A stretch of 64,000 bases of DNA from Bugula neritina (lineage: Eukaryota > Animalia > Bryozoa). The position numbers and the translations under genes are program-made. Below, in pieces: positions 24,548 to 54,339 of the stretch. The stretch spans positions 12,708,818-12,772,817 of the forward strand of contig OZ037772.1 in NCBI GenBank assembly GCA_964035545.1. Direction: 5' to 3'. Positions within the stretch are counted from its first letter, which is position 1. The number at the start of each line of letters is the position of its first letter. The notes beneath the pieces are model-generated. The model worked only from the letters and a program-made list of their open reading frames with translations, was not told where the DNA came from and ran no database searches.

Positions 24548-27147
24548 TTAAAAAAACCTTTTAAACAAATTTTCATATGCAGTTTGTGCAATGAACCCAG
24601 TGGCATTCCCTACACCTCTAGCAGCACCAGATGTACATTTTGCTGCTCCTTCAGAAAGTTCTTCTGCCCAAGTGGGCTCAAAGAGTTTAGCCAATTCTTT
24701 TAATTCTTTTGACTCCAATTGTTTTTCAATCTTTTCAATTTGTTCAGCTAGAGATTTTAATCCATCTGTTTTCTTAGACGTTAATTTTTCTTTTTGTTCT
24801 TCAAATTGCTGCTGTGAAATGAGATTCTGACTCAACTTATCCTGTAGAGATGTTAGCTTCTCTTCATATCTCTGCTTGATCTCTTGTCTTGTTCTTCTGT
24901 TCTGTGTTGCCAGCGCTTCTTTTTGTTGTGAAATAATTGCCAACTTTTTAAATTCTTTCAGTGAACTCGCCTTTTGCTCTGCCTGGTGTTCAAGTTTTGC
25001 TTCATACTTTTCTTTTAGAGCTTCTTCTTTAGCTTCTGTTTCACGTGCTAGCTTTGCATTTTTTTCCTTATATTGCTGTTGATTCAACTTATTCTCTTTT
25101 CGTTCCTCTTCTAAAATTCTTTGTTGTTCATCACACTTCAGTCGATTTTGTTCCAATTCATCCCTCATCTTTTGCAGCTCTTTTTCAGTTTCTTCATTTT
25201 GCTTTTTCTTGGCTACCAGCTGTTCAAAGATTTTTTTATAATCTTCGATGGCCTGTCTTTTGTCACGAAGAAGCTCCAGATACTCTCTATAAACATAAAT
25301 AATTATGTCTGCTTTAAACAATATTGTTACTATTATAAGCAACATATGCTTATTTTTTAAACTGATTTCTTACAGAGTATGTGGGTTTTCTGCATATTTA
25401 GATACACATTTATCACTCTGAAACATTTCTAGGGTTTCTTTAAGTATTCTCTCCGTCTCTTCAGTAACATCTGCATTTTCTTCAGCCATGGCTCTTTTTC
25501 CAATTTTCTGCAAGAAAACTAGTTAGCTTAGTTAACTGATGAATGCAATTTCAAACTAGTCAAAAATACTGGAATATTGCTATTAGATCAGAGTATTTTT
25601 TCTGTTTCTCACAATTTTTCACTTGTTTTATAAAAGTTTATTATATAATTTAAACAATTAAATATGATTTAGTTTACAAGAACAAAAATTTTTATGTTTG
25701 CTATTTAAATTTCACTGGCATTTTTAATCTTATAGAAGTTTTAATCAATTAATTTAAACTTCAATGCAGCTATACATGATATTGTAATAATTTTATGCGT
25801 AGAATGTTATGATTCGCTGCATGCAATTATTGGTGTGGGTTGTTAGCTGATTGAACACAGTGACTCTTTGTAGGAGGGTATTTATGCACAATAAATAAGA
25901 AATGTAATACTCACAATCCCCTTTATTTACTCCATAATATATATAAATCCAAAAGTAGCAGTTAGGGAGGACAACTCCTTACATGTATGGAAAACTTACT
26001 AGTAAACTGGTAAACAAAGTATAAGATAATTAACTAAGTGTGTTATTGTCCTGGCTTGGTAGCTCCGAGATGCGTCCTGTTGTGCTGCTGGCTGAAGACT
26101 GACTCTACTGTGTTGAGGGCCTCCTTTTATACGTTGGGGAACATTCCCACCAGAATGTTCCGAGCGAATTCGAGGGAATTCGCTCGAATCGCAGGGGATT
26201 CGCAGGGCTAGAATAAAGGAATCGCTCGAATCGAGCGAACTTCGCAGGGAAATCCCGGTTATCTTGATTATATAAGTGTTCCTGTGAGCCGTCAGAAACA
26301 ATAGCTAATCCAGTCACGTCGGTAGTAATAAGTAGCTGGGAATAATAGCTAATCCTATCATTGCCAACATAACACTTAGCTGTTACAATACTATGGCTAT
26401 GTAATGATGTATATCTAAGAAAACACGCATTCCATGGGAATGAAGATAATAATAGTAAGGGGGATACAAGCATTAGTTACTATACACAATTTTACCACAA
26501 TATGAACTTTGTTATCCCTCCAACATTTGAGTTATATTTGTTCAATTAGAGAAGAAATGCAAGGATGTAACATCTTTGCATTTCTTCTCTACTAGAAAAA
26601 TTTCAAAAGTGGATTTAAGACTACAAAAATTATTCATATTTAACTATATAGAAAAAGTCAGGTTAAAGCAGCTAATTGAAGTGGGTTTTATAGCAACTAA
26701 TCAATATTCAAAGCTTTTAGTTAATAGCTATAGCTGTATTGGAGATTAAAGCAGTTAACCACTCAGTCACATTCAACTGCTTGCTGCACATTGTGAATGT
26801 ATCATTCTTCATTTCCTGCTTCTTGTTGGTCTGGTAAATAAAACGATATGTTTCAACTATTCTTAAGATATCTGTAATCACCTCCATTTCCTGGTTATAA
26901 AAGTCCAGAGCTTTCTCATAAGCTTTTGAAATCAGAGACTCAATGAGAGCATCTGCAGACGTAAGGATTGTCAGTTTTCCCATCCTCACAGTACGCTGAT
27001 GCAATGCCTGCAGTAATATAAATCAACAACAGACGTAAGTTGAGATAAACTAGCATCTTCTAACATCAGTTTCAACTCTAGCTAACTGCTTCTTAAATAT
27101 GTACACACACACACACACGCACACGCACACACACACACAACACACAC

Positions 27148-27205
<58 letters not shown>

Positions 27206-30200: not shown

Positions 30201-31810
30201 TAAAAAGTTTGTTCAGTCGGAGTGTTGAAAAATAATGCAAGTCATTTTATTAGTATTGAGCCACTAATTCTTTATCAGTGACAGTGCTATTTCTGTTTGA
30301 TTCTGGACAAACTGAGCTGAAAATTTTTCTGGCAGATATTCATTGTTGTTGTATCGTAATTTTGAATTTGTCAATTTTCTTCTCTTGCTATGCGCAGAAA
30401 GCAGTACAACTATTATAATTTAAGTATAAAACTAGCTGCTGCAACATAATAGCATAGTGTTATAGGCGTGGCCTATACAATATGCTACTACTATATAACA
30501 ATATATTATTATTTGGTTAGTGCATAAATAAAAAGCCAAAAACTCTCAATTCCAATTTATATATTAATGACTCTGAATATAAAATACTTATGAGGCTGTC
30601 AAAATATTCAATTGTGTTTGTTACGGTTCCAGAGGTAAAGTTGTTTGGTGTTTTTGTGTTTAGATTCAGAGTTTTAAGCTTTGCCTCACACACCTGAGAT
30701 TTTTTAGTTAAGTGAGATTGGTCAATTAAAAACCCCAATAACATGCAAAACATTGGTATATTATACATTTCCATCTATAGTCAGATTGGGACGTTTTATT
30801 CACTAGATTCAATTATAGAAACATGTATATATAAGTCAATCAGATTGTTTTAAATATGATATCGTATATACTGCATATTTTATTCGATTTAGAAAATATT
30901 TGTACAGATAATAAACTTACATCATTGATTAGAAACCCTCTGTTCCAAATCCAGATTCCATGAGTCACAGACTCTGTACTCTGCTTCCATTTCCCACCTT
31001 CTATTTTTTCTTTTGATTTCTCCCAATCTGTGTCGTCTCCAAACTTGAACAGAAATTAAAATACAATTGTTTTAAATCACATGCATTACTAAATTAGATT
31101 GCTTTGAATATGCTAATAATAATTTAGTAAGTGTGATCTTCACCATATGGCTTCATGCCCTCTCTATGGTCAGGAAATTTATTATGTTTATATCTAATTA
31201 TTTAAAATTATCTGCTTTAATCTGTTTTTGTTTAATGCCAACAATTAATTAGTTTGTTGATGGGCAGCTTTTTAGTATTTTGTATTTTGGATGAGTTAAA
31301 AAATTGACTATGAAATAGTTTAAAACCTGGAGCTCACTTATTATACTCTATAATAAGAAGTTGTCTGTCACTTACAAAATATACAGCTTTAGTAAAGACT
31401 ACAGTGTGGTATGTAAAGAAGTATAAGGAGTGTCTCAAATTGTATATTAGTCGGTCAAAAATGAACCGATGATTTATTATAGAAATAATTTACATCATGA
31501 ATCTTGAGTCCTCTTGTTTTCCTATGCAAGATCCTATTACACTAGATAAAATACTGTTACTAACTTCCTGGTAGTGGTCCAGATACGTCTGCATGAGATT
31601 CAAGAGAAAAGATTTCCCTGATCTGTAGACACCAGTTATTGACACCAAGAAGAATTTCTTCTCTCTGAATGCAACATTAGCATTTATCAGCGCTTTAATT
31701 TCTTGTACCTGGAATAAGGGAGTATCTCCTTCCCCGATGTTATTCTTATTTGGTAATCTGATCAGCTGGGTTGAATGCTCCGGTCTGATCTGAAGATCAT
31801 GTGCTTTTTT
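24548..31810 (-). CDS. Spliced atlastin/GBP-family large GTPase with a long C-terminal coiled coil and no TM hairpin (5' end unresolved)
   Basis: GT-AG exons 31565-31810 (P-loop GVYRSGKS), 30921-31043 (THGIWIW), 29803-29961 (DCQG), 29346-29471 (LLRD), 28870-29011 (FAVPGPG), 27659-27777, 26882-27007, possibly about 26771-26830, 25374-25507, 24548-25286; phases all compatible, no internal stops. Confidence 0.9.
25783..26499 (-). mobile_element. Solo LTR in a GTPase intron
   Basis: TG...CA; TSD ATAT (25779-25782, 26500-26503); minus-strand TATAAAAGG and AATAAA; GAAnnTTC motif cluster. Confidence 0.8.
27102..27212. repeat. (CA)n microsatellite
   Basis: Read directly. Confidence 0.95.
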
Positions 31811-32015
31811 CTAAGAAAGATACCTCTTTATATACCAACACCAGTAAATACCTTTAGTCTTGATAGCAGATTTTATGCTCACAAGTTATTTCCATAATTC
31901 AGCTATGCAAAATCAAAACCCATAACAGTTGTAGCATACCCAAAATGTGACTGGTCCCAAAACAGTAAAGTTTTACAAACTAAAGGTCTTTCAAAACTAA
32001 ACCTTTTAAAGTTTT

Positions 32016-33897
32016 TTAGATTTCAAAATTTCCAGTTATCTTCATGAATAGCAGGCAAGTTACAAGGGTCATAAGTATTAAAAATACAACCTTTTGAAGT
32101 AAGTTTAGGCAGCTTGTTAAGGTGATGCCTGTGTTCAATGCTGTCGTGGGTGTGTTTGTTACTGGGGGAGTTTCATTGTTAAAATATACAATCATATTGT
32201 TGTATATTTTTATGCAGTGAAGCTACTAATTTGTGGGTTATGTGTGTGTTGCAAAGCTAGAACATACTCTTTGTGTGTTTAAGAGAGAGAACTGGAATTG
32301 TAATCAGTGGGAGAATAAACTATATTATTTATATTACTTTACAATTACAGTTACATCGAGATAAGAGTCATTTACATCAGTAAAAGCTACACACTAGCAA
32401 TCACATTAACCCCCTGTTCACTCCTACAGTACACGTTTCTCGATATCAAATCTTCCCGTTCCTTTTTTCTCTACCACTGCAGGTCAAAGAAGTACATGTT
32501 ATCAGGAATCAGTGCTTTGGAACAGGTTAAAACCTGAGCTTAAAAATCAGTCTAATCCCAGTGTATTCATGCAGGGCGGGTGTAAGGTTTTGCCTTCTTG
32601 CCGGAGAGCTATGACTTAACTTAACTGACTTACTTTACTGACTTACTTAACCGACTTAACTTAATTCACATAACTTGACTGACTATACTGACTAATTGTT
32701 AATCATTTTAGGCCCTGCGCTTTCACTAGCCTCTGCTATGGCGCACCATTGGGCCTCATCATTACCTCCTTTGGGTGATCCCTTGTATTCTTTTTACTTT
32801 ATGTATATATTGATGAAATAAACAAACAAACAAACAAACACATTGCCGTATCGCAAACCGTAACAGTGATGACAAAATGGCATCGCTGTTACATTTTGTC
32901 AACAGGCGTTCACACATTGACGTAAAAGTACAATGCATGACGATGAGCTGTGACTAATCATAATAAAGCTATAACTCTTGTCTGCAGTGACTTGTACGCC
33001 TTTTGATATTATTCACTTATTTGTCGAAACATTCTTTTCAGAAGATATGATAAAAATGTTATTGACTAGATAAAATCAATTTAAATAGGAAGTCTCTTTT
33101 TTAAATATATGAGTCTTTAAAATAATTGTGCAAACTAATTTGAATAATAAGTATTTAAGCCGTCTATATAATTTTTAAGTTTTTGGTTTGCTTGCTTTTG
33201 TAATTTTTAAGCTGAGTTTAATTCAAAAAACCGTAAAAATTTTTTAATCCTTTAAAACTTTTGAATTAGTTAAATTAAATCAACAATAAGCGATTAAAAT
33301 AAACTAGCGAAATGTTCTTTAACTTTTAGTACTAGATCAGCTCTACCCAATAGGAGCCCGACATTATTTTTTGAATAAAGCACTGCTTGATCCACGCCGC
33401 AGCGTGTACCGGTGTACGATTCAGCCTGGATGTGATCAAAGTAGGCGGACATTTGCTGTTACGGCGTACGTTACGACAATGTATGAGCAGGGGTTAAGAA
33501 TCCTACTAGCCAAGTGTCACTGAGCGTACAGAACCTCCTGCTTATAAAGGAGGGCTTCATGCTGATTGGCCCTGCGGATTCAGGTTGTCAAGCCGCAGCA
33601 TGGGCTGCCGTGTGGCATCCCAGAGTGCCGTGGCATGAGTAGATTGAACATAATACAATAATTAGTCATAATACAGAACGCATAGGTTAAGTTCCAGGTA
33701 TACGAAGAGGGAAGGGGGTAGCACGATATATCCTATGGCCATCAATACAGTTCTTAACTCTAAGTTGTTGCACTAGCCTTGCACTAAGCAACTGAAATTG
33801 AAACAACTTCATATGTTTCACAATATATAAAGTATTATTATATAAACTATTTAATATAATTATACAAATATATATATTTCATATTATAATCACATAG

Positions 33898-33988
<91 letters not shown>

Positions 33989-36900: not shown

Positions 36901-37832
36901 AAACCAAATGTAACTCATTAATATTAATAGTATAACTATAACTTATAGTTATAGTTATACTATTATTATTAATCATAATGAGTTACATTTGGTTTTACTA
37001 CCAAATACCAGTAAATCATGAATGATAATCATTATGATTATCATCATGAGTAACCGTACCTCAAACTGTGAGTCATAGTGAGAGTCATTTAAATAGTTAC
37101 TAGTTGAGTAGTAGTACTAGTAGTAGTATAGAATAGAATAGACTAAGACATACTGATAGTGATACTCCTACGGCTACTCCTAGTGATACTGATAGTACAA
37201 ATATTAATAAATTGATAACTACAAATAATCTTGGCAACAATTCTAAGTTAGTAGCGTAAATGATTGTTTTGAGTATAATTACCTGTATTGTTGCGGTTTT
37301 CAAGCTTGAACGCTAAAGATAAAGATTAAGTTCAGCATTTATCACCAAAGGGCAAAACAGCTCAGTAACTTAAAAGCTAACTTTGGATGGAACGCGATGA
37401 AAAACTAAACTTAGCCTTCGATTTTTAATATGATGTTTCTGACAGTACGAAGAAAGAGGTGGAAGCTAAATTTATTTGATAAAAAATAAATTTGCAAGAT
37501 CTCACGCTATGAAAATGACTAAAATTGTCCTCTTTCTTTAATTGATAACTTCGCAATTTTTTCATCATTTAGAAAATTGAAAGCCTTAGTTACCAACTTT
37601 AAATGCAATTTTAGAGCTGAAGGAATCATTAAATGCTTACGAAAGTATGATTTTTGAAATCCTTGGATTTTTTTGCATTAGAAAAGTTTAAAATCTAAAA
37701 ATTGGAAATTAATTTCAAATTTAAGTATTTCCAAATTAAGCCTTCATTTACTACACTTAATAAACGCCGCCACATCCCCGGTTTTGTCGCGACTGGTCAC
37801 ATATATATAATACATTTCTTATTATTGCATAA

Positions 37833-37871
<39 letters not shown>

Positions 37872-37896
37872 ATAATTGTATCGTTGCTCTTTTCCT

Positions 37897-37991
<95 letters not shown>

Positions 37992-38194
37992 GTTATATAT
38001 ATACGTGTATATATAACACGTATATGTATATATACATATATATACATATACGTGTTATATATACACGTATATATATAACATATGTATATATACATATATA
38101 TATATATTTATATATATATATATAACATATGTATATATACATATATATATATTTATATATATATAACATATATGTATATATACATATATATATA

Positions 38195-38292
<98 letters not shown>

Positions 38293-38311
38293 AGGAAAAG
38301 AGCAACGATAC

Positions 38312-38379
<68 letters not shown>

Positions 38380-38437
38380 GTTATATATATACGTGTATAT
38401 ATAACACGTATATGTATATATATGCATATATATATAC

Positions 38438-38475
<38 letters not shown>

Positions 38476-38566: not shown

Positions 38567-38611
<45 letters not shown>

Positions 38612-41600
38612 AGCAAGGTCTCGCCACAAAAATGGTTTTGGTACGGACTGAGAAGAAGTTTTAACAAATCTCTCACTTTTATTAATTTTCTTCTAAATCG
38701 TAAAAACTACAAGTAACATAAAGAATACATATAGGTGTGCTAAAACTCATACAATACAGTTGTTCAAATACCAGCAAACATCACGATATAATATTAAAAT
38801 ATAACAGCAATAAAAATTGTAATAAAAGACATAAAGCATTATCAAGTTAAAAATAGCAAAGAATAATAATAAAATACCTTTATTCTCTTGACGAGCTTGC
38901 TATAATATCTTCAAAATTTAGCTCTTTGTCACTTAACTTAACAAAATAAGTAGCTCAGCTTAGGCTACATGAGTGACTGTCTTTTTGGAGTTTCAATGCT
39001 GCCTTAAATACCAGGGCAATCACAAAGAAAAGGTAATTACATCTAAATTTAGCTATAATTAGGGTCAGCTAACTATGGGGCACATGTAATAACCTCATAA
39101 AGGAAGATGGATCAGTTCCTGTCAAACCCATAAAAGCTGACTTCAACAAAGGTGGCGGTTAGGCTTTACCAATTATTAGGCAGCTGACTGCTGCACAGGA
39201 GAATGAACTATCTAATAATAACAAATATCACCATTAAAAGCTAAAAATAAAAGTTCTAGTGGTATTTGTAACAAGGGCTATCATGCTTCTTTGTTAGATC
39301 CTTTACACTCCCCCCTTTAATTTCACTCAGGGAAATTAACTAAACTGATTCAAAAAAATTAACTTTCAGTAGGTTCTAATTCATTTAGGGCACGTATCAA
39401 ATTTAGGAGGGCCTAAACAAGAAGATTAGTTTTTGAATTGGCCTCTCAAGCTGTGTTTCTGATTTTATTCTTCTACCCTTTCTGTCTAACTTTTCTGCAT
39501 CAGCTATGCTAAGCCTAACTCTCCTAACTAAGTTGTCATCACTAGGAAATACTTCCACTACTCTGCCTAATGGCCAATCTCGCCTGTTTTTGTCATCACT
39601 AACTAAAAGTACTACATCTCCCACAGCAATGTTAGCAGCCCTTTTCAACCATTTTGGCCTGGATTGAATTTGTTGCAAATAATGAGTGCGCCAACGTTTC
39701 CAAAATTGATTTACCAACCCTTGAACTACTCTCCAACGTTTTCTACAGTATACATCTTGTTCATCAAATTGACCAGGAGGAGGCAACACTACTTTGGACT
39801 TCATAGTTAATAGTTGGTTGGGAGTTAGTGGCATTGGGTAACTTTCATCTGTTTGAGATATTAGTGGCCTGCAGTTAACTATTGCCATTACCTCATATAA
39901 TAAAGTCCGCAGTGTACTAGTATCTAGCCTTGTGCTGTTTATAGCTAGCATTGAGTTTAAGACAGACCTGATTGTTCTTATGTGGCGCTCCCAGACACCA
40001 CCCATGTGACTTGAGTGGGGAGTGTTTGTAACCCACTCGAAGCTATTACTTTCAGAAAAGCTTTCAATTTTTCTAGTTGCTTCTTTTGCAACACTTGCTA
40101 GCTCATTAGCAGCACCTATAAAATTAGTTCCCCTATCAGTGTGTAATTGTCTGATGGGCCCTCTAATAGCTATGAAACAGCGCAATGCATTTATAAAGGC
40201 ATCAGTAGATAAATCGTCCACTAACTCAATGTGAATAGCCCTAGAAGCCATGCATGTGAATATAACCCCATATTTTTTTAATTCTTTTCTGTTATCCTTA
40301 ACAACAAATGGGCCAAAACAATCACTGCCTACATATGTGAATGGAGGGGTTGGTTCTATTCGTTTAGATGGTAAATCTGCCATTTTTTGAATTTCTGGTG
40401 CACTTCGTGTTTTCCTACATGTGACACAATTAGCTATTTGAGAGGAGACCAAAGAATTACAGCCTAAAATCCAATAGCCTGAATTTTGAATTTGAGCAAT
40501 TGTCATCCCTCGACCTTGGTGCATTACTTGTTTGTGACAGTGGTCAACTACTAACTTAGTGATGTGAGACTTTTTTGGCAAAATAATAGGGTGCTTTTCA
40601 CCATAGGCAAGGCTTGAATTTTTTAGTCTTCCCCCTACTCTTAGCATATCATTTTTATCAGTAAATGGGTCAAGTTTGAGTATTTTGTTACTCTTGGTAA
40701 CTTTTCCAGCCTTAATTTCCTTGCATTCATTAGCTAGGAACTCCATTTGAGCCCATTTTAAAATTTGCATCTTTGCCTTTTCAGTTGATGCCACATCTGA
40801 CATAACTGTGGTTTTGGTTTGTTTACATTTAGCCCTAGCTATCTTTTGTAGTGTACTAATTGCTCTAACAGCTGATGAGAGGCTAGAGAAAGCTTTGAAT
40901 TTCTCATTCCATGATTTACTGAGGTCATTTACTGCAACAACATGTGTGGTGGCTTTGACCTCTGGGTCATCACTAGCAATATCAAATTTGTTCCGAGTGG
41001 TTAGCATGTGAGTCAAATCTGGCTCGTGTAGAAAGCCAGGCCCATTGAACCAACAGGAATCTAGCAACTTGGCAATAGATGAAATTCCCCTAGATGCTAT
41101 ATCAGCTGGGTTAGATTGTGTGTTAATGTACTGCCATTGGTTAGGTGTACTAAGATCTCTAATTTGTTGCACTCTATTTGCAACATAAACATGAAACCTC
41201 TTTACCTCATTGGTTATGTAGCCTAGAACAACTTTTGAATCTGTCCAAAATATTTCATCTGTGATATTTTCAATTTTAAGATCTGCTTTAAGAGAATCAG
41301 CCAATTTTGCAGACATTACAGCTGCTTGTAGTTCAGCCTGAGGTATGGTTACTGACTTATTCAATGGAATTACTCTGGATTTAGCGCTAAGCAAAGCAAC
41401 ATGAACATCACCATGGTTGTTTACAAGTCTGATATAGGAGCATTGACCATAACCTATTGCACTAGCATCTGAAAAGTGATGCAGCTCAGTTTTCACAATT
41501 GTATCAAAATTAGCAGGATATATGCATCTAGGTATTGCTACATTGTCTAGCATGTTAAATTCATGTTTCCAGGAGAGCCACTGAGCACTAACATCTTCAT

Positions 41601-44600
41601 TTACTGGGGCATCCCATGTTGTCCCATCTTTACATATAGATTGCAAAATCTTTTTGCCACACAGTATGAAAGGAGATAAGAAGCCTAGAGGGTCAAATAA
41701 AGATGCTACTGTTGACAAAATTCTACGCTTTGTAGCTGGCTCAATTTGTTTGAGATTCATTGAGAATTTAAAATTGTCAGACTGCGTGCACCATTTAATG
41801 CCTAATGCTCTTTCCATGGGCAGAACACTGTTGCCTGTGTTCAAATTCAAGTCCTTAATTGTTTCAGCTTTTTCTGAATTTGGTATTGTATCTAGGAGTT
41901 GTGTACTGTTGCTTACAAACTTATGCAACCTAATATTTCCTGTTTTGCAAAGATCCACTGCTTGAGAAATTACATTGGCCATGTCTGTTACTGAATTTAA
42001 GCTCAATAATCCATCATCAACATAGAAATCATTGATTATAAAATCTTTAGCTCTAACACTGTGTTCATCGTTTGCATCGTGATTTTTATTTGCCAAGTAA
42101 CGTAAACCAAAGGTGGCGCATCCTGGTGAAGATGTCGCACCAAACAAATGTACAGTCATTCTGTACTCTGCTACTTTGGTTAAACTAGCATCAGTGTACC
42201 ATAAAAACCGAAGGTAGTCTCTGTCATTTTTGTGAACTTTGAACATGTGGAACATTTTCTGTATGTCGCACATAATCCCTACTTGGCCTTTTCTAAATCT
42301 GTGTAGAACACCTACCAGCCTATTCATTAGGTCAGGGCCCTGAATAAGATGGTCATTGAGAGACAAGTTTGCATATTTAGCACTACAATCAAAAACTACT
42401 CGGATTTTCCCTGGTTTTTTGGGATGATAGACACCAAAATGTGGTATGTACCATGTACTGTTGTTTTGAGATTTTTCACACTCTGGCACTAGCTCAGCAT
42501 CACCAGCATCAATTACGTCATTCATGAATTTTAAATAATCCTGCTTCAAGTGCTCATTCTTGCTAAGTTTAGTCTTAAGTGACTCAAGTCGCTTTTCAGC
42601 CATCAAGCGGTTATTGGGTAGGTAGGGCTTGGCATCAGTTTTAAATGGCAAAGGCATGGTGATATAACCCCCTTCATTTTGCTCAATACCTGCTTCTAAT
42701 TTGGAAACAAATAGCTTATCTTCTTGTGACATAGTTGTGCATGCTCTAGTTTGATTTTCCATGAAGTCTTGCTGTAGCAATTCAAGTACATTTTGAGGCA
42801 ATATTTGCTTGCTTGAGTTTGCAGTAGCACAATCAAAGGTTACAGCTGTCTGTTCATTTTTGCATGCATGCTCATTGGTCAAGGTTACTGTCCTACAGCA
42901 CGTGCTAAATTGCTTACTGCCAGGGTAGCTGGTATTTCCCACAATGCACCACCCTAGAGGTGTTCTAACAGCAAATGGGTCAGTGTCATGAGATCCTACT
43001 ATTAACTGCTGTGGCATAAGTGCTTTAGACACATCATAACCAATTAGCATAGAAACTGGTACATTTTCAAGACTTGGGAATTCATGTGCTATTTGCTGCA
43101 AATGAGGCCATGCATTTGCTACTTTGGCAGATGGAATATGTGACTTGTCAAGGGGAATAACTTTAGTTGAATATGCACAAGGAATAGCTATTTTGTCAGC
43201 ATTGTTATACCCACGAACCATCAAACCACTGTACCTACAGCATTCATTTGAGCTTTTAGTGCCATTCATAGTTGTAAGTTTTAATGAGGTTGCTTCACCT
43301 GGTGCATTTAAACAATCTGCTGCTTGAGTTGTAATAAAGGTAGTGTCAGACATGGTATCAAGCATAGCATATACCAAGATTTCCTTTTCGGGTGCACTTG
43401 CATCACACAGCCAGACTGGCACTACCATGGAACTCAGGCCAGAATTAGCTCTTACAGTACTACAGTTGTTTGCATTGCTAGCACTATCTATGTTTGATGC
43501 TACATTTCCTTTATCATTGGTTACACTGCTTTTGCTAGTAACTTTGCTACTATAATGACCATCATTTTGGGTATAACTTCCACTATTAGACGGAGACCTT
43601 CCAATATTCCCTGCATTGTCACGTGTACTACCATAATGCATGCTAGTGGGGTGCTTGCCTTGGCATTTTTTGCAGATACATACTTTGTTGCATTGAGCCT
43701 TGATGTGATTTGCCTTAAGGCATTGAAAACAAAGCCTATATCTACTTGCATACTGCTTTCTTTCATGTACTGACAACTTGCCAAACTTGAAGCATTCATC
43801 AATTTCGTGGTTACTCATGTCACAAAATATACAGTGCTTGCTTGATGTAAGAGAAGTTACACGTGTGTTAGCCACTGGTTTACTATAACTGCTGCTTATT
43901 GGTCTTTTAGCATCTATCCTATCAGCATGGTCCACACTAGCTGTCACAGGGTCATTAATAATATCAGATTCAGTTTTTACAAACTCTACAAACAAGCCAA
44001 ACTTTGGATAAGCACCATTTGCCTTTCTAAATTGCGTTAACTTCCTTTTCCACCTACTTGACATCCAGTCAGGAAGTTTTTCATACATGGATTTATTTTG
44101 CTGAGAATCATTGAGAATATTTAACTCATCAAATCTAAGCATGGCAGCTTCACATTGGCACAAGAAATCTGAATATTTCTGAATAGAAATTCTGTCATGA
44201 GGTTTGATCTTAGGCCAATTATTTAGTTTTGTTCTAAAGGATTCAGCTACTGTATAGCTAGAACCAAAACGTTCACGTAAAATTTCCTTTGCCTTACAAT
44301 ATGCATCATCACAATTTAGTAGGAAATATCCACTAATTGCCTCCCTTGCACTACCTCCCACATATTTTTTCAAATAATGAATTCTATCAGATTCAGGAAT
44401 ACTAGTTCTCTCAATAAGAGTTCTAAGGGAAATTTCCCAATCAGCATACTCAAGAGGGTTGCCACAGAAAACTGGTGGTTCAGGTATGGGGAGACGATTT
44501 ACATGCATAGCTTTAGTTATAGAATCTGCAAGGACATGTATATCACTGATATTGTTACTGCTCAAAGACTGCCCGTTACCTATTGCTGGATGCTCATTGT

Positions 44601-46601
44601 TTAAACTAGGTGCTATAACATTCAAATTTTCACCTACAGCTACTCTTTCGAGAGGAGGAATGATTGGGTCGCCATGCAAAGAAATTACATCAAGAGCGTC
44701 TTCTATTTCCTCCCTCTCATCTACATCATATTCTTCTAATACGTCACGCCTAACCATAATTCTTTGCTTTTTAGCTTCTAATTCGCTAGCTTGCAATTCT
44801 AATTGCATTGCATCTATTTGTGCTTTCAACTGTGCTTGCTTTCTTAAAGTTTCTAACTCTATATCAACATTTGCTGCTGCAAGTTTATTCTTAACCACTC
44901 GAATTGACCTATTACTTTTAGCGGAAATGCTACTAGCCTTAGTTGAATGCTTAGGGCTTTGAACTTCAAGAGGAGGTGAGGCACTGTGTTGCCCTTGATC
45001 AATTTCAGTACTTTTTGGCATAGATTCAAGAACTTTAGCCATTGTTTCTACTTGCTTAGCTACCTCACTAAGATCTTCACTACTACTGCTAGTTGGTAAA
45101 TTGCCAAGAACATGCAGCTCGGTTTGAGCTTCTAAAACTGCGCTTTGCATCTCAGAAATGTTTTCTGGATTATTAACTGGTTGACTTTTCAACAGCTTGT
45201 TAAATTTACGGATACAAGAATTTACAGACTTTAATCCTTTTACCAGCTCATTTTCTTGAGCCTTTTCAGATAAACCCCTAGTTCTGCTACTTTTCCTAGT
45301 TTCAGAAATACGGCTACCACTATGTATAGAAGACATGATTTTTGTTTCAAACACCACTTAAAACGTTACAACTAATTTGTCAAGTAATTACTAAGCAATT
45401 TTCCTAACCTATGAATTCATCAACCTAACACCACCAGAAAATGCCAACTAATTAATTTCAACAATTAACAAGGAACCGACCTCACCCTCAATGCAAGGTC
45501 ATCACATGCAATACAACAAAGGGACCAAATAATACTCCTATATACTAAGTTACTATAAGCCCTAGATTGCCTGGTATTTAAGAATATAATTGCTCACCCC
45601 TTCTTCTACTTCCGGAATGAATGGAGGTTTCAATTAATTCCAAATGAAATGTTAATGTTAATGCTGAAATTGTCCTCTTGGCTGAAGGTACGACTTCTTG
45701 GAAAGGAGTGGGTAGGTAGTAGGGAAAATGCTGCGAAATGGAACTTGACGGACTGCTATCTCTAGTTGGAGACGAGGACTTCACTGCCGACTCTCACAAC
45801 CACTTGGAAAGGAATCTTTATTCTCTCACCACCACTTGGAAGCAGCGCTTTACTGCTTCACCACTTGAGATAAAGTTTTTACTGTTGAGCAAGGTCTCGC
45901 CACAAAAATGGTTTTGGTACGGACTGAGAAGAAGTTTTAACAAATCTCTCACTTTTATTAATTTTCTTCTAAATCGTAAAAACTACAAGTAACATAAAGA
46001 ATACATATAGGTGTGCTAAAACTCATACAATACAGTTGTTCAAATACCAGCAAACATCACGATATAATATTAAAATATAACAGCAATAAAAATTGTAATA
46101 AAAGACATAAAGCATTATCAAGTTAAAAATAGCAAAGAATAATAATAAAATACCTTTATTCTCTTGACGAGCTTGCTATAATATCTTCAAAATTTAGCTC
46201 TTTGTCACTTAACTTAACAAAATAAGTAGCTCAGCTTAGGCTACATGAGTGACTGTCTTTTTGGAGTTTCAATGCTGCCTTAAATACCAGGGCAATCACA
46301 AAGAAAAGGTAATTACATCTAAATTTAGCTATAATTAGGGTCAGCTAACTATGGGGCACATGTAATAACCTCATAAAGGAAGATGGATCAGTTCCTGTCA
46401 AACCCATAAAAGCTGACTTCAACAAAGGTGGCGGTTAGGCTTTACCAATTATTAGGCAGCTGACTGCTGCACAGGAGAATGAACTATCTAATAATAACAA
46501 ATATCACCATTAAAAGCTAAAAATAAAAGTTCTAGTGGTATTTGTAACAAGGGCTATCATGCTTCTTTGTTAGATCCTTTACAATATATATATATATATA
46601 T

Positions 46602-46678
<77 letters not shown>

Positions 46679-49600
46679 CATATATAATTAGTTTATGAAA
46701 TATTGTAAGAAGATGATAAACTAACCAATTGTCATCATCAGCTGGCTGAGGGTTTACTCTTCGTCTAACTTTTGGGGGTCGCTCTGCATTATAGAAAGAA
46801 ATCTGACTAGCAACTTGACCATTAAAGATTTTAAAAAAAATGTACATATAATTAGCAGTTAGTGGAAAAATACATAGCCTGTTTTCTACATAGCGTATAA
46901 ACAGTATGCTAATCCCTGGGTTAATGAAGCTTTATTTGAAAAGTTAGAAGGAGATCTGAGCAAAAATGATAGAGCCTTCACACTTTTTAAAAAACAGCAG
47001 TAGCGAGTAGCATATCATACTTTAATTTGTTTTATTTCGACATAAAAATTATGACATTTATAACATAAAATAATATCTAATCTATAAACTTAACTTAGAA
47101 CACTTGTGGGCTCTAATAATGATTTAGCATTATATATGCATCTGTTCAGCAAGAAAAATTGAAGTTAATTATGAGAATAGGGAAATATTTTAAGTTAGCT
47201 ATTTTTAATAAATTGCTATCTTTAAAATTTTAAGTTGCAACAAGACATTTTTGACTCAACTTTTTAAACCCTAAATTTATTATCCTTCAACAAAGTTAAT
47301 AGGTAGTTATCTTACCTGTTTTTTCTAACCGTGAAATCATTTTTTCATATCTTATATTTTTCAAATTTATATACTCTGTTAAAGCGCTGATCTCTTCTCT
47401 CAACTTTTCATGCTCAGCTGCATGTTTCCGAAAGGTAGCGTCTACTCTATCTTTGAATGGCAAATCTTTATGTCTTTGTATGGAATAGCCAACTTCGTCT
47501 CTCAGCCTAATGAATTTCTCTTCCACTTCTGTTTGTCTCTGTCTCAGCTCGGCAGCTTCTTGTTGGCTGATGCTAGACCCCAGCTGACTTCTGTACTGCT
47601 CAAAGTCATCATCAGCTCGACGGTACAACTGCAGACACTCTCTTGTCCCAGAGGTGCCTTCTCTGTCATAATCTCTGAGTGACAATTCCTCAACAACTGC
47701 ATCAAGCTCTGGCATCAACTTGTAGACTTTGCTATCGACTAGTTTAATGGGAATGTTTTTTTCATCCATTTCACTCTCAGCCTACACCATATAAAACTCA
47801 GCTGAAAAAATTAGTACTTTCACGACTTTCATCCTACAATTATTTGATCTAGACTACGTTCATGTAAACAGGATAGAGCTTTATTGTTGAATAGTATATA
47901 GTTAATTATTTTCCTAAAATCAAGAAGATATTAAGGTATAAAAAAATTATGTCCACACATGCAGCAGCTCATGCATGTTAATGTCTGTTTGAAAAAGCAC
48001 ATTTTTTTACCATATATGTAACAGAATATTAGTTTGAAAATATTTTAACATGCAGGCAGTCTATCTTTGTATATGGCCTATATTATATATATTAAATGTA
48101 AATTTAAAAAACTATAAGATATTTTTTAAATCTTTGATCTATGTGTGAATCAAATTGTTAGAATTTAAACTAATAGTACTAAAATCTTAGTACTGCTGAG
48201 GTTAAACAAAACTATCTAATATCTACAGCTATATTCAACTAACCCGCACTGGCTTGACGTAGTTTATCTTCTCGTTTTCTGTTTCTCTGGGTGCACCCTA
48301 CAAAGTTTCATAGATGTTAAACACTTACAAGCTACAAAACAAAATATTCCAATACTTGCCAATTATTAATACATTGATTGCAAATTTAGCAATAATATTT
48401 GGTTGTATAGATAATGAGTTTAGGTTTTGACCCTCATTTCTGTTTTCACAAGCAGCTATAAAACGAACCTGCTTATAGAGCGTTTCAGGGCCTAGCAGAG
48501 TTTGTCCTTTAGATGCAGAGTCTGGTGGTAAGCAGTCCTGAAATTTATAACACTACACAGAGAGAAATATTAGTGCAGTGCTTGCACTAAAGCTGTTCAA
48601 AGAGCCTTTTATTGTCGGTATAGCCTGCACCACACCTTTAATAGTTGTTAGACCTGCACTTATTTTGATGAAATTGAAAATTAATCCGATTAGTGTAAGC
48701 TGAAAAATATTTTGTAGTAGCTCTGAAACCACTTAGTTGTTAAGTCAACGCTACTTTTCACAAGTATTACGTAATTATCATCCCTAGGTCTTAATGAAGC
48801 TAAACAGTAATTGATAGGAGCAGAAAGTGAGGTCAATGCTACAACTACATATGTTTAAGCAAAATTTTATTTACATAAGAATTATGGAACAATCCGCAAT
48901 TGTGCACCTAACAACATTATCCGTTCACATGTGCACTAATGATGATCACAAACCTTTATAGGAAGCTAGGATAGAGTTGAACCCTACATTTGGGTCATTT
49001 CGATTGGTGCTTCCCAGTTAGATGCTATTTATACATTTTACGTGCAATTTATTTGAATACTATTGAAATTTATGTGCATTTAAAAAAATTTGAGTCAATT
49101 GCTTTTTATAATTGGCACACAAATAAATTTCTTTGCTCTGCATAAACCTATTAATTTTGCATTTTCTATATTTGTTGTTTTTTGAAAAAATGTTATTATT
49201 AATGCATTTAATGGTTTTTTTCAACACAAATTTGAAAAAATTTAAATATTATTGCAATTATATCATATTAATGGTTATTTTATGTTTAGCAATTGATATG
49301 AAAGTTATAATTTTATAAGGGTATATAGGTATATAATACTTAGTACCAAAACAAAGAATACAACCTAACTGAGGAGCATATAAGTGGAATGAAACTCCTT
49401 CAACCTACTAGCTGTTTATGATTTCGGAATTTTTTTGAACCCAAGACATTTTCAAATAGCTTGTTACCAGACTACTATTAAACATTGCCCCAATCCGTTT
49501 ATCAAAGACTTAAGTTGAATTTATCAACAAAAAATTTCAACTGCACATATCTCTTGCATGGGTAGTTTAGGCTTCACTAGTCAATTTCATTCATGGAAAG

Positions 49601-52600
49601 GAAAGCCAACTAATTTAAAATGTGTGTAAAAGAGAAATCAGGGAGATGCATCATTAAACTCCAATGTACTCAGTTATCAGCAAATGTGTTTCAAACAAGA
49701 AGCTTAAAATTAACAATGAAACAAGCTAGTGAATAGTCAATTGTGGATCAGTTGAACCACTTCAAAAGCCTTGTGTAAACTTGTGTAAACTACCTGGTGG
49801 AACAAAAGAAGATGTTGCATAACAGAGCTATAGTAAGGAAATATTTAAATTGTGATTCAAAGGCAAGAAACTGGCTTACCAAGCATCGAAAGCGCAAAAC
49901 AAAGGTTATTACATAACAGCACATAGTTTTCATTCACTGCTATTGACCGAAGAAATATTCTGCCGGCATAGTGAACACCAGAGGCTCAGACTAAGAGGTT
50001 GTGCTTTGAGATTCAGTAATTTGTGCTTCCAAACAACCTTACAACATGGAAAACATTGAATCATTTCATCACATGGGTAAAGATTGCAGCTACCTCTCAG
50101 AGATAGAAGATGATCACTTTCTTTCAGAGTTAGGAACTGAAGTTGTCATTGCAGCAAAAGGTAAGCTCAATCATTTGCTTAACGTTGTCATTTTGATTTT
50201 ATATATCACAATCACAATGACAGTATGACTATTGCTGTATACAGATAATTGAATTTGTGCAACTATAACTTTTAAGAAACCACATTAACTGATATTTCCC
50301 AAACTACTCTATTCCTACATCAATTTGAATTTGATACAAGTTTTCCTGTAACAATATATTTTCAAAAAATGTAGCGTTTTATTTCCACTTCACCTTCTAG
50401 CAATTTGTGCTAAATTCATTAATTTGAATTCCCCCCCCCCCATTGTAGAAGTATTCATATTGTTAATAATGCAGTTTAGCAGCCTACAAGTAGTTATTAG
50501 CCTTAAGCAGCTGCCAAGCTAGCTTCTTGTTTTATAGCTAAGTACCAAAATGCCAATATTAGTGGTGAGTTGGCAAATTTTTTTATTAACTTCCGTGCTA
50601 CCAGTTTATTCTTTTATTTATCTTTGCACAGCACAATTAAATATAAAAACATGTTTAAGTAGCAATATTTTTCTTGGTAGTACTTTATTTGTTTTTCAAT
50701 TTATAGACATACTGAAACTTATCAATATTTGTTATCTCGATATGAGGGGTCCATATAAAATGCTGACTCCAGCTTAAATTGTGGTTCACTGACATTTTGA
50801 GATAATTTTAGTGCAGAGAAGCTTCTATTAACTAAACTAATTATGCCCAACAGCTCTTGCATTTGTAATTAAGAAAGAAGTAAAATAAAATGATGGCCAA
50901 AATTTTTACTAAATTGTGATAAGCTCAAACTAACCCAAACACTACGCAACATAATGATCATAAGTTTGCCAAAGCCTGTATGGTTATTCAGAATCAAACG
51001 ATTGGTACGATGGTGCTGAAAATATGCTGAAAGATTCATAGCTAACATCATTGATACTATTAGTTTTGGCCTTAGACTTCAGCTTCTTCAAAGTTGAACT
51101 TTATTTATAAGCTGCTTGTGATTGTATATGGTAACCAAATGTTTACTGTTCATACTAATACAGTTTAAATATTACCCAACTTTTATCTTTTGTTGTAGAT
51201 CCCATAACATTTTTTAAGAACATGCACTCAAAGATGCTGAATAGGAGCACAAAAAAGAATTTGACCGCTACAAAACTTCTAATCATGCCGAGACCTTTAG
51301 CCTGCAAGCAGACGCACTCACCACTACATTACAAGCTTCACTGGGTGCTCTCGACACTACACCTCACCCACTTCTCAAGAACTCAGCTGCCTTTTTTATA
51401 CTACTCCTTCTAGCTTCCCTGACCACTCAACTCCTCTCGGAGTTCTACCACACTTTACTAAATGCTGAAATTAGTTATAAAACTTCCCCCTCCCCCCCTC
51501 GCGTACTTGGGTTACTATCACAGACCTCGGACTTGCACACAGGTGTGCTAACCGTTACACACCACAACTGCTTGGTTATCGCTACACTACAGAGCAAGAA
51601 TGTAATGACACACACTATGGTCTTAGCAGGTTCTGCTAATATTGAGAAAAGTTAACTGAATTTACAGTCGTAGAAAATTCTTCAAATGCTTATTTTCATG
51701 TTTTTTTTTCTTATTTTAATCTTTAGAAGTTATTTTTTGTTGCATTTCTTATATTCAACTATCATATACAATAAAATCCACATTACTATACTCTCATACT
51801 GGTTAGAAGTTATGACAAGTTAGTTCAGAGTGATCAGTAATAATTTTTGCAGAAGCTTATTTCCAACAAAAATTAGAGCAGCATGGAACATTTATAAGTT
51901 CAGCTTTGAATATAACTTAGTTCAGCATTGAGCATATCTAAGATCATCATTGAACAGAAATAAGATCATCATTAAACATATATAATATCACTATTGAGCA
52001 TAAATAAGATCACCATTGAACATATATAATATCACTATTGAGCATAAATAAAATCACCATCGAAAATATTTAAGCTCACCATTGAACATATATAAGATCA
52101 CCATTGAACATAATTTGGCTCATTGTGATAAATACAAAGAATCAACTTCACAACTCTTTATATCAACATTGATCTAACACACTATTCACTGTGAACAGTA
52201 CCTGACACTAATTTCTGTTCACTGCTGGTCAATTTAGGGATCCAAAAAACGAGAGGTTTTAGTTGTCAGCTTATGTTCACTCTAACACTAATATTTCTCT
52301 CTGTGTATAGTTTTAATTAACTGTATTAAAATTGAAACAGAAGTCTAGCTAAACCTAAAATGGACAATTGAAAAAAAACTTTCAAAAGTTTTGAAATGAT
52401 ACTAAACAACTGATGCTGCAATACCTAACAAACCAATGCTGACTTTGCATGTGCTATATTTTTTATGTCGTGTTGTGTGGTGGTATGTAGTGTAATAGCA
52501 TGTGACAATAAGATGGTGCTGACTTGTAATGTATTACATGTTGATTTATTAGGTACAATTATTAAGAATATAAACTGATAATAACACTTTGGAATCTAGC

Positions 52601-53514
52601 AACTAACTAACCGTTTAGCAATGACTGCACATGCATTATGTATAGATGCTGACTATGACAATAATAAGGAAGTGCATGATTCACACAGATCTACTAAGTA
52701 TAGCTATTAGGTATAGCAAGACTCTAGGACAGCATAATGGCATGCATGATTTATAGAAAAGTTATATACCTCAGCTAATTTTTGCTGCTTGGAAATAGTT
52801 GTTCGTGGCATTGGAACTGGTTTCATGGCATAATCTGACTACAAAACAGACTTATCTGTGCACAAGCTGGTTCAACTACCATTGTAGTTACTGAAAAAAA
52901 TTTGTTTAAAAGTCTATTGTCATCTGCTTTTCAAACTAAAATCCTAAAATGCCTATTTTAAGCAATACGAGGAAAGGCAATCTATGAATTTAGGTGACAT
53001 ACATTTTGCATTTGAGTTAGTGAAATCTGAGTATAGAAAAAATTATAGTCACAAAGTTGGCTAGAACGTTTTTCTGGTCATATCAATTCACTTCCACATT
53101 TTGTTTATTATACTATGGATAAAACTTTTAGATAAATAATAATTAAATAATAATTTTGAATAAAAACTGTGGCTAAACAATACATGTTTGAGAAATAATT
53201 ATTGGTAGTATATATAGCATGGTCATATCAGACTTAAAGTGTGACCACAAAAAACTCCCTAAAGGTATCATTAGAAAATTGTTTTTTTTTAAACATATCC
53301 AATATCATACCGAAGTTAGCGAACAGCCAGTGAGTAAGTCAGCTGTCTCATTTTCGAAATCAACTATAAAACAAAGATATAGTTTAAACTATATATATAG
53401 GTAAATATTTTCTATGCAATGACTAAGAAATGGGTAAGGTATAACCAAAAACCTAACACTTGAATTTTATTTTACAAAGGTTGCATATGATAACTTTGCT
53501 GAATTTTATATAGG

Positions 53515-53558
<44 letters not shown>

Positions 53559-53903
53559 TTACGAGCTAGCAATTTAATTATAAATAAGTATACGAGAAAC
53601 ATTGTTGATTTATTACTTTATTAGGTAAAGTAATTATATACTGATATTTCGGGTACCACTGTACCCATCTTCAGAGTAGCAATGAATGAAATTCAAAAAT
53701 TATTACGTTACGTTAGACGTTAAGCATGACACAAGGAATAGAGAGTGGCAGTTATTGTAAATTATTGAAACTTAGGGAGATAATCTTATTTTATATTACG
53801 CAGGTCAAAAATTATACTGATTTTCTTGCATAAAAATAAATTAGAATTGACAAAAAAAAAAAAAAAACTAATAAAGTAATAAATCAACAATGTTTCTCGT
53901 ATA

Positions 53904-53972
<69 letters not shown>

Positions 53973-54339
53973 ATATATATATAATATAACATATATATAT
54001 AAACAATATTGTAAACTTTTTAGTGGTTCCACTTGCTAAGAAATTTTTAGAGTTGTGAATGAAAGTTTCAACTAGCAATTAGAAAATAAGAAAGCATTTC
54101 GAATAATACAGCTTGCATGTATAAGAAGATATTTTTAGTATTGGCTACTAACTCACAATGTTAACAAAATAATACTTCAAAAAGGCTTCATATGCATTTA
54201 TATTATAAACTTTTCCAAAACTAGTAATAATATATTATTAGCATGTGCGCAAATGTTTTTGCTTTAAGAGAAGATGAAATATTTACCTGCAGATTGAATT
54301 AAATTGTGACTCTGTAAGTCGCATGCTCTGCAGGAAGAT
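32016..54339 (-). CDS. Spliced gene A2: paralog of A1 (coiled coil and tail anchor, no clear RING); possibly partly pseudogenised
   Basis: Exons about 54288-54339, 52770-52838, 48470-48538, 48244-48295 ([18 protein letters not shown], like A1 APRGIENEKKNYFKPVQ), 47314-47781 ([15 protein letters not shown]), 46726-46783, and last exon 32016-32178 (163 nt as in A1, ends [24 protein letters not shown]) with an AA acceptor; 5' exons uncertain. Confidence 0.6.
32410..33493. mobile_element. TTAA-flanked MITE (piggyBac- or Harbinger-like)
   Basis: TIR CCCCTG(T/C)TCA(C/T)ACATTG..CCGTAACAG; TTAA on both sides; left TIR split by the insertion at 32422-32838. Confidence 0.75.
32422..32838 (+). mobile_element. 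Retroposon 3' end inserted in the MITE TIR
   Basis: Ends AATAAAC(AAAC)n and splits the TIR precisely. Confidence 0.6.
33903..33988. repeat. (TA)n microsatellite
   Basis: Read directly. Confidence 0.95.
34030..34243 (-). mobile_element. tRNA-head SINE
   Basis: A box TAGTCTAGAGG and B box GGTTCGAACCC, followed by a non-tRNA body. Confidence 0.6.
34273..37800 (-). mobile_element. 3.5-kb DNA transposon derivative, Sola1-like, with decayed exons
   Basis: Imperfect TIRs GTGACC(T/A)G(G/T)C..ACAAAAC..GGGATGT with further subterminal matches; 4-bp TSD ATAT (AWWT); exon-like remnants at about 35210-35420 and 35690-35796. Confidence 0.65.
36546..37026. repeat. Two adjacent spacer-less AT-rich palindromes
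   Basis: 36546-36865 and about 36864-37026 each fold back on themselves with nested hairpins. Confidence 0.9.
37801..38606. repeat. Complex (TA)n array, continuing at 46584-46675 beyond the BEL insertion
   Basis: TA runs with ACGTGT/ACACGT variants and an inverted duplicate of a unique segment. Confidence 0.95.
38607..46583 (-). mobile_element. Full-length BEL/Pao LTR retrotransposon
   Basis: 701-bp LTRs 38607-39307 and 45883-46583, identical by eye; TG...CA; TSD ATATA; poly-G PPT at about 39308-39318. Confidence 0.97.
39403..45357 (-). CDS. BEL/Pao Gag-Pol polyprotein (1984 aa)
   Basis: Three Cys/His knuckles; protease LDTMS; RT KIRVVFD and FYVDD; RNase H FSDAS and WTDS; integrase GSDCFGP, TDRGTNF, GGVWER; uninterrupted. 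Confidence 0.97.
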   Translation of the reverse strand: MVFETKIMSSIHSGSRISETRKSSRTRGLSEKAQENELVKGLKSVNSCIRKFNKLLKSQPVNNPENISEMQSAVLEAQTELHVLGNLPTSSSSEDLSEVAKQVETMAKVLESMPKSTEIDQGQHSASPPLEVQSPKHSTKASSISAKSNRSIRVVKNKLAAANVDIELETLRKQAQLKAQIDAMQLELQASELEAKKQRIMVRRDVLEEYDVDEREEIEDALDVISLHGDPIIPPLERVAVGENLNVIAPSLNNEHPAIGNGQSLSSNNISDIHVLADSITKAMHVNRLPIPEPPVFCGNPLEYADWEISLRTLIERTSIPESDRIHYLKKYVGGSAREAISGYFLLNCDDAYCKAKEILRERFGSSYTVAESFRTKLNNWPKIKPHDRISIQKYSDFLCQCEAAMLRFDELNILNDSQQNKSMYEKLPDWMSSRWKRKLTQFRKANGAYPKFGLFVEFVKTESDIINDPVTASVDHADRIDAKRPISSSYSKPVANTRVTSLTSSKHCIFCDMSNHEIDECFKFGKLSVHERKQYASRYRLCFQCLKANHIKAQCNKVCICKKCQGKHPTSMHYGSTRDNAGNIGRSPSNSGSYTQNDGHYSSKVTSKSSVTNDKGNVASNIDSASNANNCSTVRANSGLSSMVVPVWLCDASAPEKEILVYAMLDTMSDTTFITTQAADCLNAPGEATSLKLTTMNGTKSSNECCRYSGLMVRGYNNADKIAIPCAYSTKVIPLDKSHIPSAKVANAWPHLQQIAHEFPSLENVPVSMLIGYDVSKALMPQQLIVGSHDTDPFAVRTPLGWCIVGNTSYPGSKQFSTCCRTVTLTNEHACKNEQTAVTFDCATANSSKQILPQNVLELLQQDFMENQTRACTTMSQEDKLFVSKLEAGIEQNEGGYITMPLPFKTDAKPYLPNNRLMAEKRLESLKTKLSKNEHLKQDYLKFMNDVIDAGDAELVPECEKSQNNSTWYIPHFGVYHPKKPGKIRVVFDCSAKYANLSLNDHLIQGPDLMNRLVGVLHRFRKGQVGIMCDIQKMFHMFKVHKNDRDYLRFLWYTDASLTKVAEYRMTVHLFGATSSPGCATFGLRYLANKNHDANDEHSVRAKDFIINDFYVDDGLLSLNSVTDMANVISQAVDLCKTGNIRLHKFVSNSTQLLDTIPNSEKAETIKDLNLNTGNSVLPMERALGIKWCTQSDNFKFSMNLKQIEPATKRRILSTVASLFDPLGFLSPFILCGKKILQSICKDGTTWDAPVNEDVSAQWLSWKHEFNMLDNVAIPRCIYPANFDTIVKTELHHFSDASAIGYGQCSYIRLVNNHGDVHVALLSAKSRVIPLNKSVTIPQAELQAAVMSAKLADSLKADLKIENITDEIFWTDSKVVLGYITNEVKRFHVYVANRVQQIRDLSTPNQWQYINTQSNPADIASRGISSIAKLLDSCWFNGPGFLHEPDLTHMLTTRNKFDIASDDPEVKATTHVVAVNDLSKSWNEKFKAFSSLSSAVRAISTLQKIARAKCKQTKTTVMSDVASTEKAKMQILKWAQMEFLANECKEIKAGKVTKSNKILKLDPFTDKNDMLRVGGRLKNSSLAYGEKHPIILPKKSHITKLVVDHCHKQVMHQGRGMTIAQIQNSGYWILGCNSLVSSQIANCVTCRKTRSAPEIQKMADLPSKRIEPTPPFTYVGSDCFGPFVVKDNRKELKKYGVIFTCMASRAIHIELVDDLSTDAFINALRCFIAIRGPIRQLHTDRGTNFIGAANELASVAKEATRKIESFSESNSFEWVTNTPHSSHMGGVWERHIRTIRSVLNSMLAINSTRLDTSTLRTLLYEVMAIVNCRPLISQTDESYPMPLTPNQLLTMKSKVVLPPPGQFDEQDVYCRKRWRVVQGLVNQFWKRWRTHYLQQIQSRPKWLKRAANIAVGDVVLLVSDDKNRRDWPLGRVVEVFPSDDNLVRRVRLSIADAEKLDRKGRRIKSETQLERPIQKLIFLFRPS
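51250..51591 (-). mobile_element. Miniature LTR element (TRIM) with tRNA-like LTRs, diverged copy
   Basis: Two TGTAGTG-starting direct repeats; internal GAGTTGAGTGGTCAGGGAAGC shared with the 54684 copy; 5-bp TSD GAGCA. Confidence 0.8.
51926..52112. repeat. 22-bp minisatellite, about 8.5 copies
   Basis: Consensus CATTGAACATATATAAGATCAC. Confidence 0.9.
53556..53908 (-). mobile_element. Penelope-like element remnant in a (TA)n array
   Basis: About 40-bp inverted repeat (53585-53624, 53868-53908) enclosing a minimal hammerhead motif. Confidence 0.6.
53639..53678 (-). ncRNA. Minimal hammerhead ribozyme-like motif
   Basis: TACT-CTGAAGA-T-GGGTAC agtg GTACCC-GAAA-TA-TC-AGTA. Confidence 0.6.

Follow-up and report, generated by a model that had tools for sequence, protein, structure and literature searches.

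Here, we identify a start-less GTPase gene in a 64,000-nt stretch of DNA (the window) as the product of a rearrangement that very probably deprived it of its start-carrying micro-exon, so that its body now lies behind the 3' flank of a RING-coil gene, A2. This structural reading rests on sequence comparison. What became of the gene afterwards is less certain: that it is a recently orphaned gene, not yet decayed, is the best explanation, and one that we hold to be about evenly balanced between right and wrong. An initial annotation had instead proposed that one locus switches between a tail-anchored and a GTPase isoform.

All genes discussed are on the (−) strand of the window, and its proteins have their closest relatives in Bugula neritina and Watersipora subatra. 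The non-coding DNA differs by ∼8% from that of B. neritina. Seven B. neritina-type GTPase copies were compared, on contigs L033, L035, L036 and L037. Spliced models were joined for phase checks and local comparison, while databases were searched exon by exon or with natural proteins; metagenome scans returned no relevant locus. Splice donors were scored with a matrix built from 31 predicted donors of related genes.

A GTPase body without a start

The GTPase sequences in the window are the following.

24548..31789 (−): GTPase body of nine exons and 631 codons with G1-G4 motifs and a coiled coil, no TM segment and no CaaX
31789-31565, 31043-30921, 29961-29803, 29471-29346, 29011-28870, 27777-27659, 27007-26882, 25507-25374, 25286-24548 (−): its exons
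23153..23689 (−): second GTPase remnant, a promoter-like piece and part of a last exon
63065..63484 (−): last-exon fragment (3' half) of a GTPase paralog that is otherwise missing here; identity to B. neritina last exons 83-84%, upstream DNA devoid of a P-loop exon

Thus, two further GTPase copies are left in the window only as last-exon pieces. The initial annotation described the first exon of the GTPase as a Met-less phase-0 exon with a stop just upstream and all later exons as intact, and the letters bear this out: the AG at 31812-31811 opens a phase-0 frame that runs to 31565 with an in-frame stop directly upstream, and the later exons, including 29961-29803 with the DCQG motif, are open and bounded by GT-AG sites. 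Residue 66 of 631 is the first Met, behind the GKS at residue 58. The motifs lie at residues 53 (GVYRSGKS), 102 (THG), 123 (DCQG) and 193 (RDY); together with PF02263 (GBP_N) on two exons they place the protein in the GB1/RHD3 (atlastin/GBP) group. Its nearest named matches are bryozoan atlastin-like proteins, and 395 of 539 residues (73%) are identical to B. neritina ATL1 (P0165). In exon structure and sequence, the body matches a bryozoan TM-less atlastin-like subfamily, of which it is the sole near-complete copy found in this genome. The C-terminal two-helix TM hairpin of atlastins is absent, the maximal 19-residue hydropathy after residue 300 being 1.01, as is the C-terminal CaaX of vertebrate GBPs, the protein ending in NLFKRFF.

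Comparison with relatives changes what is to be explained. In seven of seven B. neritina-type copies, an 8-10-codon phase-0 ATG micro-exon reading MGxxxS lies ∼250-1,300 nt before the P-loop exon (L033:6360, L035:746/10001/16692, L036:10001/18153 and L037:11350), and a Watersipora relative starts with MGSEES. We take this micro-exon to fit the N-myristoyltransferase consensus, as a predicted motif. Two more distant paralogs in this genome also have a Met-less phase-0 P-loop exon, here behind a 9-codon ATG exon that does not start with MG; they lie head to head, 2.6 kb apart, at 13071785-13074719 of the contig, ∼300 kb from the window, and are conserved in B. neritina (L034), where the NCBI model P0004, an ortholog of one of them, starts with a 9-codon ATG exon. 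The family order is promoter, 5' UTR exon, short ATG micro-exon, phase-0 intron and P-loop exon. In the window cluster, a micro-exon with MGxxxS before the P-loop exon is undetectable. Judging from these sequences, the Met-less P-loop exon that the initial annotation took for an anomaly is the norm of the family, and the anomaly is the missing micro-exon. The proposed acceptor at 31810 also gives way: the one homologous to the family's is the CAG before 31789, and the AG at 31810 sits in DNA resembling the 3' flank of the A2 paralog A1, a similarity that is weak alone (p=0.02).

Two observations concern the B. neritina copies themselves. In the model EB796_007879 (P0162; L037:10001-16096), the end of one tandem GTPase is joined to the beginning of the following one, and a good micro-exon at 11350 is passed over; this fusion is probably a gene-model error. 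In the P0164 gene, an internal deletion reaches from exon G5 to within the last exon (L035:13050-13760), like the fragments in the window.

The RING-coil gene A2 and its paralogs

A2 and the sequences between it and the GTPase are arranged as follows.

60359..60376 (−): predicted first coding exon, MENKYK, phase-0 donor (score 8.0), in frame to the RING and to 31810/31789
56870-56767 + 54345-54287 (−): Sina/SIAH-like RING finger on two exons
53363-53311, 52838-52770, 48537-48469, 48297-48244 (−): linker exons, all with phase-0 donors, the first three predicted from frame and splice sites only
47781-47316 (−): helical/coiled-coil exon, phase 1
46783-46726 (−): exon 6, phase 2, ending in TG
38607..46583 (−): full-length Pao/BEL LTR retrotransposon (Peptidase_A17, RVT, integrase) in the last intron, on the same strand as A2
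32195..32408: dispersed repeat that borders on the splice site of the last exon; in one copy the match extends to 32179
32016..32178 (−): tail-anchor exon, open, 163 nt like that of A1, acceptor AA, hydropathy 2.45, p=0.003-0.01 to the A1 tail
31811..32015 (−): 205-nt spacer, an A-type 3' flank (score 98 versus a shuffle maximum of 47, to about 31830)
5910..12747 (−): paralog A1 with RING-like finger, coiled coil and tail anchor (368 aa), no GTPase downstream

The initially annotated start of A2 at 54339 does not hold; 54345-54287 is the second RING exon of this gene and the predicted start is at 60376. Upstream of the GTPase, no ATG exon of first-exon type lies nearer than this predicted first exon, 28.6 kb away. 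The RING shows an eight-ligand Cys/His pattern across its two exons, and the first exon alone matches Pfam Sina_RING at E=0.078 with 13.6 bits against a cut-off of 29.3. A2, A1 and A0 are RING-coil-tail-anchor genes of 368-371 codons with mostly matching phases. For A2, dN/dS is 0.70 on one exon. The two LTRs of the Pao/BEL element are identical (701/701). B. neritina contig L031, which carries the A2 ortholog, stops right behind the coil exon, so that the last exon and downstream sequence lie beyond the DNA read.

The array around A2 is variable. In A1, the RING exon (11885-11782, (−)) has Arg in place of the His ligand of A0, A2 and A3, and 189 nt behind its tail exon a 39-nt candidate exon (5721-5683, (−); acceptor 8.5, donor 6.6) is in phase with A1 exon 6. 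This candidate is possibly part of an anchor-less A1 isoform or a 3' UTR exon, and its acceptor may be the counterpart of the AG at 31810; we dropped the idea that it is a GTPase remnant, as the acceptor context alone aligns (p=0.02). Past the right end of the window, A3 (L013:9914-6200 + L014:298-272; about window 90200-94300) is an open 612-codon RING-coil gene. Its last exon of ∼356 aa looks protease-like by eye, gave no Pfam hit and follows the same phase-2 intron that precedes the tail-anchor exon in A0-A2. The RING-coil genes of the array exchange their last exon at this single phase-2 intron, which leads to either a tail anchor or a protease-like domain. Another RING gene, A4 (L013:2960-2325 + L012; about window 87000-75000), has low-complexity and 276-aa coiled-coil frames, and its upstream region and UTR exon are homologous to GTPase promoters. 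Among mobile elements, a Ty1/copia-like element with a 1398-aa open frame (L011-L012, window about 72330-67680) is absent at the matching place in the B. neritina-type L033, and elements that by eye are LINE-like, with broken reverse transcriptase frames, lie at window 19600-15700 and 56400-55400.

Breakpoints of the probable rearrangement

The junctions comprise the following.

60912..63063 (−): spacer, promoter region and 5' UTR exon (60959-60923); the same block leads to a GTPase gene in B. neritina and to A2 here
60826..60922 (−): left switch point; the intron behind the UTR exon is of A type, like A4, not of GTPase type (score 51 versus a shuffle maximum of 38)
31803..31812 (−): right junction, where A-derived DNA meets the final ∼14 nt of the GTPase intron

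In B. neritina, L035:7660-9837 covers the DNA behind the stop of a GTPase together with the promoter region and 5' UTR exon of its successor, P0164, and window 63063-60912 matches this block at 85.5% over 2238 nt. Collinearity breaks ∼10 nt past the UTR exon; it is restored from 31803 onwards, 14 nt ahead of the family acceptor at 31789. Accordingly, 460 nt in B. neritina, including the micro-exon, correspond to 29 kb here, including all of A2. The adjacency of A2 and the GTPase is derived and absent from all seven B. neritina-type copies read; the right junction is a derived feature of this lineage. None of the family copies compared has an A gene directly upstream, and neither A1 nor A0 has a GTPase downstream.

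Since the A and GTPase families share their 5' segment, the promoter and UTR exon, crossing-over there is plausible. The left junction could have arisen in either direction and the GTPase body is, by intron, a mosaic of B. neritina copies, so that the comparison agrees with a single insertion as well as with a plain 5' deletion; the mosaic also makes single-gene orthology soft. A2 exon 1 may be a diverged GTPase micro-exon. The P0164 micro-exon finds its best match among 290 tiles of the insert in this exon, which would favor a GTPase rescued through A2 exons; other probes equal that score elsewhere. For such an origin, both ATG and donor would have to be lost and the frame altered, and a start with ME is also found in A-type first exons.

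A tail-anchor switch is not supported

Several elements of the initial annotation are present in the sequence. The last exon of A2 ends 205 nt upstream of the GTPase frame, at 32016, and AAG|GTTGTA occurs in phase 0 at 32091/32090. The AA acceptor of this exon is real in the sense that one contig from a public DNA run covers 31622-32273 with 0 differences and at the depth of its neighbours, the run possibly being the assembly's own source. Nevertheless, we consider it highly improbable that the GTTGTA donor serves a regulated choice between the tail anchor and the GTPase. The spacing is as described and the donor is weak but possible: at 4.9 it outscores six of the 31 real donors and ranks among the top 5% of intronic GTs. 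However, the exon could be entered only through the AA acceptor (score −1.5), which is abutted by the dispersed repeat, or a cryptic AG at 32112 (score −7.4). A1 does have the hexamer at the matching place (CTA|GTTGTA), but as a donor this scores 1.3, below all 31 annotated donors; we therefore read the shared GTTGTA as Val-Val codons of the membrane helix. A1 has no GTPase to join, and inspection of paralogs and relatives gave neither the adjacency, absent in the seven B. neritina-type copies, nor a conserved usable donor or acceptor. Recruitment of the GTPase to membranes by a coiled coil shared with a tail-anchored partner also loses its appeal, as relatives with a predicted N-terminal lipid anchor need no such partner. 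What stands of the earlier proposal is one probable transcription unit and a conceivable RING-GTPase product; what falls is the switch mechanism.

Two other routes to a start fare little better. A bicistronic unit resolved by spliced-leader trans-splicing, with which we group an assembly artefact, is likewise most improbable. The short 205-nt spacer resembles operon spacing, but a leader supplies no ATG, the first Met after the acceptor being behind the P-loop, and the literature match found concerns chaetognaths. An artefact gains some room from the possible identity of the confirming run with the assembly's source, yet one error-free contig spans the junction. Slightly less remote, though still very unlikely, is a new local start, in which a promoter in the repeat drives ATG 32195 in the tail-exon frame, spliced at 32090 or 32063, or ATG 31895 in phase 1 is spliced to AAG 31803. 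These ATG-donor pairs are open and in phase; their donors score only 4.9, 1.3 and 4.3, the 31803 acceptor −4.2, and a promoter in the repeat is purely hypothetical.

A possibly orphaned gene or newborn chimera

Under the orphan model, a member of the tandem GTPase family would have lost its micro-exon in this lineage through either a single insertion of A2 into its first introns or a plain deletion of its 5' end, with the homology of the A and GTPase promoter/UTR exons as the likely substrate for unequal crossing-over. Transcription of the GTPase could then come only from the A2 promoter. Default splicing would run through the A2 exons to exon 6, beyond which the AA acceptor would be unusable; exon 6 joined to 31810 or 31789 gives a TGA at the joint. 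The predicted product is an anchor-less RING-coil protein from an NMD-type message with eight introns behind the stop, and no GTPase.

Several lines of evidence support this model. First, the micro-exon present in all seven B. neritina-type copies, and its counterpart in the two distant paralogs, is undetectable here. Second, collinearity is preserved on either side of A2, and the spacer is an A1-like 3' flank. Third, neither A1 nor A0 is followed by a GTPase, nor are the other GTPases preceded by an A gene. Fourth, in A2 itself the last-exon acceptor is dead, a repeat borders the splice site, an LTR element in the last intron is very young and dN/dS on one exon is 0.70. The TGA formed by exon 6 and the P-loop exon and the two GTPase copies reduced to last-exon pieces also count in favor of the model. 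Against the model stand an open frame without lesion, a dN/dS like that among B. neritina copies and the status of the gene as the only near-complete copy of its subfamily. Apart from the missing start, there is no lesion in the 631 codons or the splice sites. In simulations, an intact frame had P<0.004 if the gene had been neutral over 25% of the lineage since the B. neritina split, and 0.15 at 10%; thus, if lost, the gene must have been lost recently, roughly within the last tenth of the lineage. dN/dS to the B. neritina copies is 0.23-0.47, compared to 0.17-0.41 among those copies, and six non-synonymous and five synonymous changes are private to the window GTPase (p=0.08 versus neutrality).

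The same intact frame and purifying-level dN/dS would suit a gene that was rescued after the same rearrangement as a chimera, by canonical phase-0 splicing from an A2 donor to 31810/31789, a possibility that we regard as real but doubtful. Five annotated A2 donors are in frame with the GTPase, those at 60358 and 48243 scoring 8.0 and 10.1. Splicing from exon 1 would give an unanchored MENKYK-GTPase, from the linker exons a RING-linker-GTPase-coil protein and from a weaker donor in exon 6 at 46769 a RING-coil-GTPase-coil protein. The spacer contains neither AATAAA nor ATTAAA, which together with the dead tail acceptor would favor read-through. Rescue would require that well-formed exons are skipped and that transcription passes the same-strand 8-kb LTR element, and no RING-GTPase fusion was found among relatives in the searched length range. 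It is unlikely that a RING E3 and a GBP/atlastin-like GTPase, joined recently by recombination between promoter-sharing families, are expressed as an in-frame RING-GTPase-coiled-coil protein; such a protein, having shed the tail anchor as well as the myristoyl anchor, would be a case in which the RNF112 architecture arose independently and very recently.

If orphaned, the GTPase illustrates birth-and-death evolution in what is probably an immune gene array, an ordinary case but a well-resolved one, and it cautions against reading every start-less exon that follows another gene as a splice switch. If rescued, it shows a domain fusion at its very beginning. A more solid by-product is the dedicated phase-0 micro-exon of the B. 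neritina copies, which with its predicted N-myristoylation adds a third membrane-anchoring solution to the TM hairpin and CaaX.

Comparison with known systems

The B. neritina ATL1-like genes (P0164, P0165; GCA_010799875.2) and the W. subatra atlastin-like and GBP4-like proteins share with the window GTPase the GBP_N GTPase, a long coiled coil, the lack of a TM hairpin and the exon structure. These relatives have their own ATG micro-exon with MGxxxS, and in two Watersipora proteins the C-terminus reads CSIM or CTIL; the window copy lacks both a start and a lipid motif. BmAtlastin-n also combines a GTPase and a coiled coil without a TM segment (PMC4926086), and vertebrate GBPs combine lipid anchoring with birth-and-death evolution (PMC9005921). 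The TM-less GTPase-coil design is common to all of these, and the bryozoan copies add a predicted N-terminal myristoylation motif.

RNF112 is one gene encoding a C3HC4 RING, a GTPase, a middle domain and a predicted C-terminal TM helix (PMC12012479). In contrast to RNF112/neurolastin, the RING and GTPase of the window could share one chain only if the rescue splice were used, for which in-frame joins exist on paper; here, two separate families were joined recently, and no C-terminal TM helix follows the GTPase. Any likeness of the locus to RNF112 would be convergent.

In tandem arrays, unequal crossing-over yields chimeric or truncated genes. The locus resembles such products in the breakpoint in a shared homologous 5' segment, the mosaic paralogs and the leftover fragments; it differs from the usual tandem-array chimeras in that two unrelated protein families share a promoter/UTR exon.
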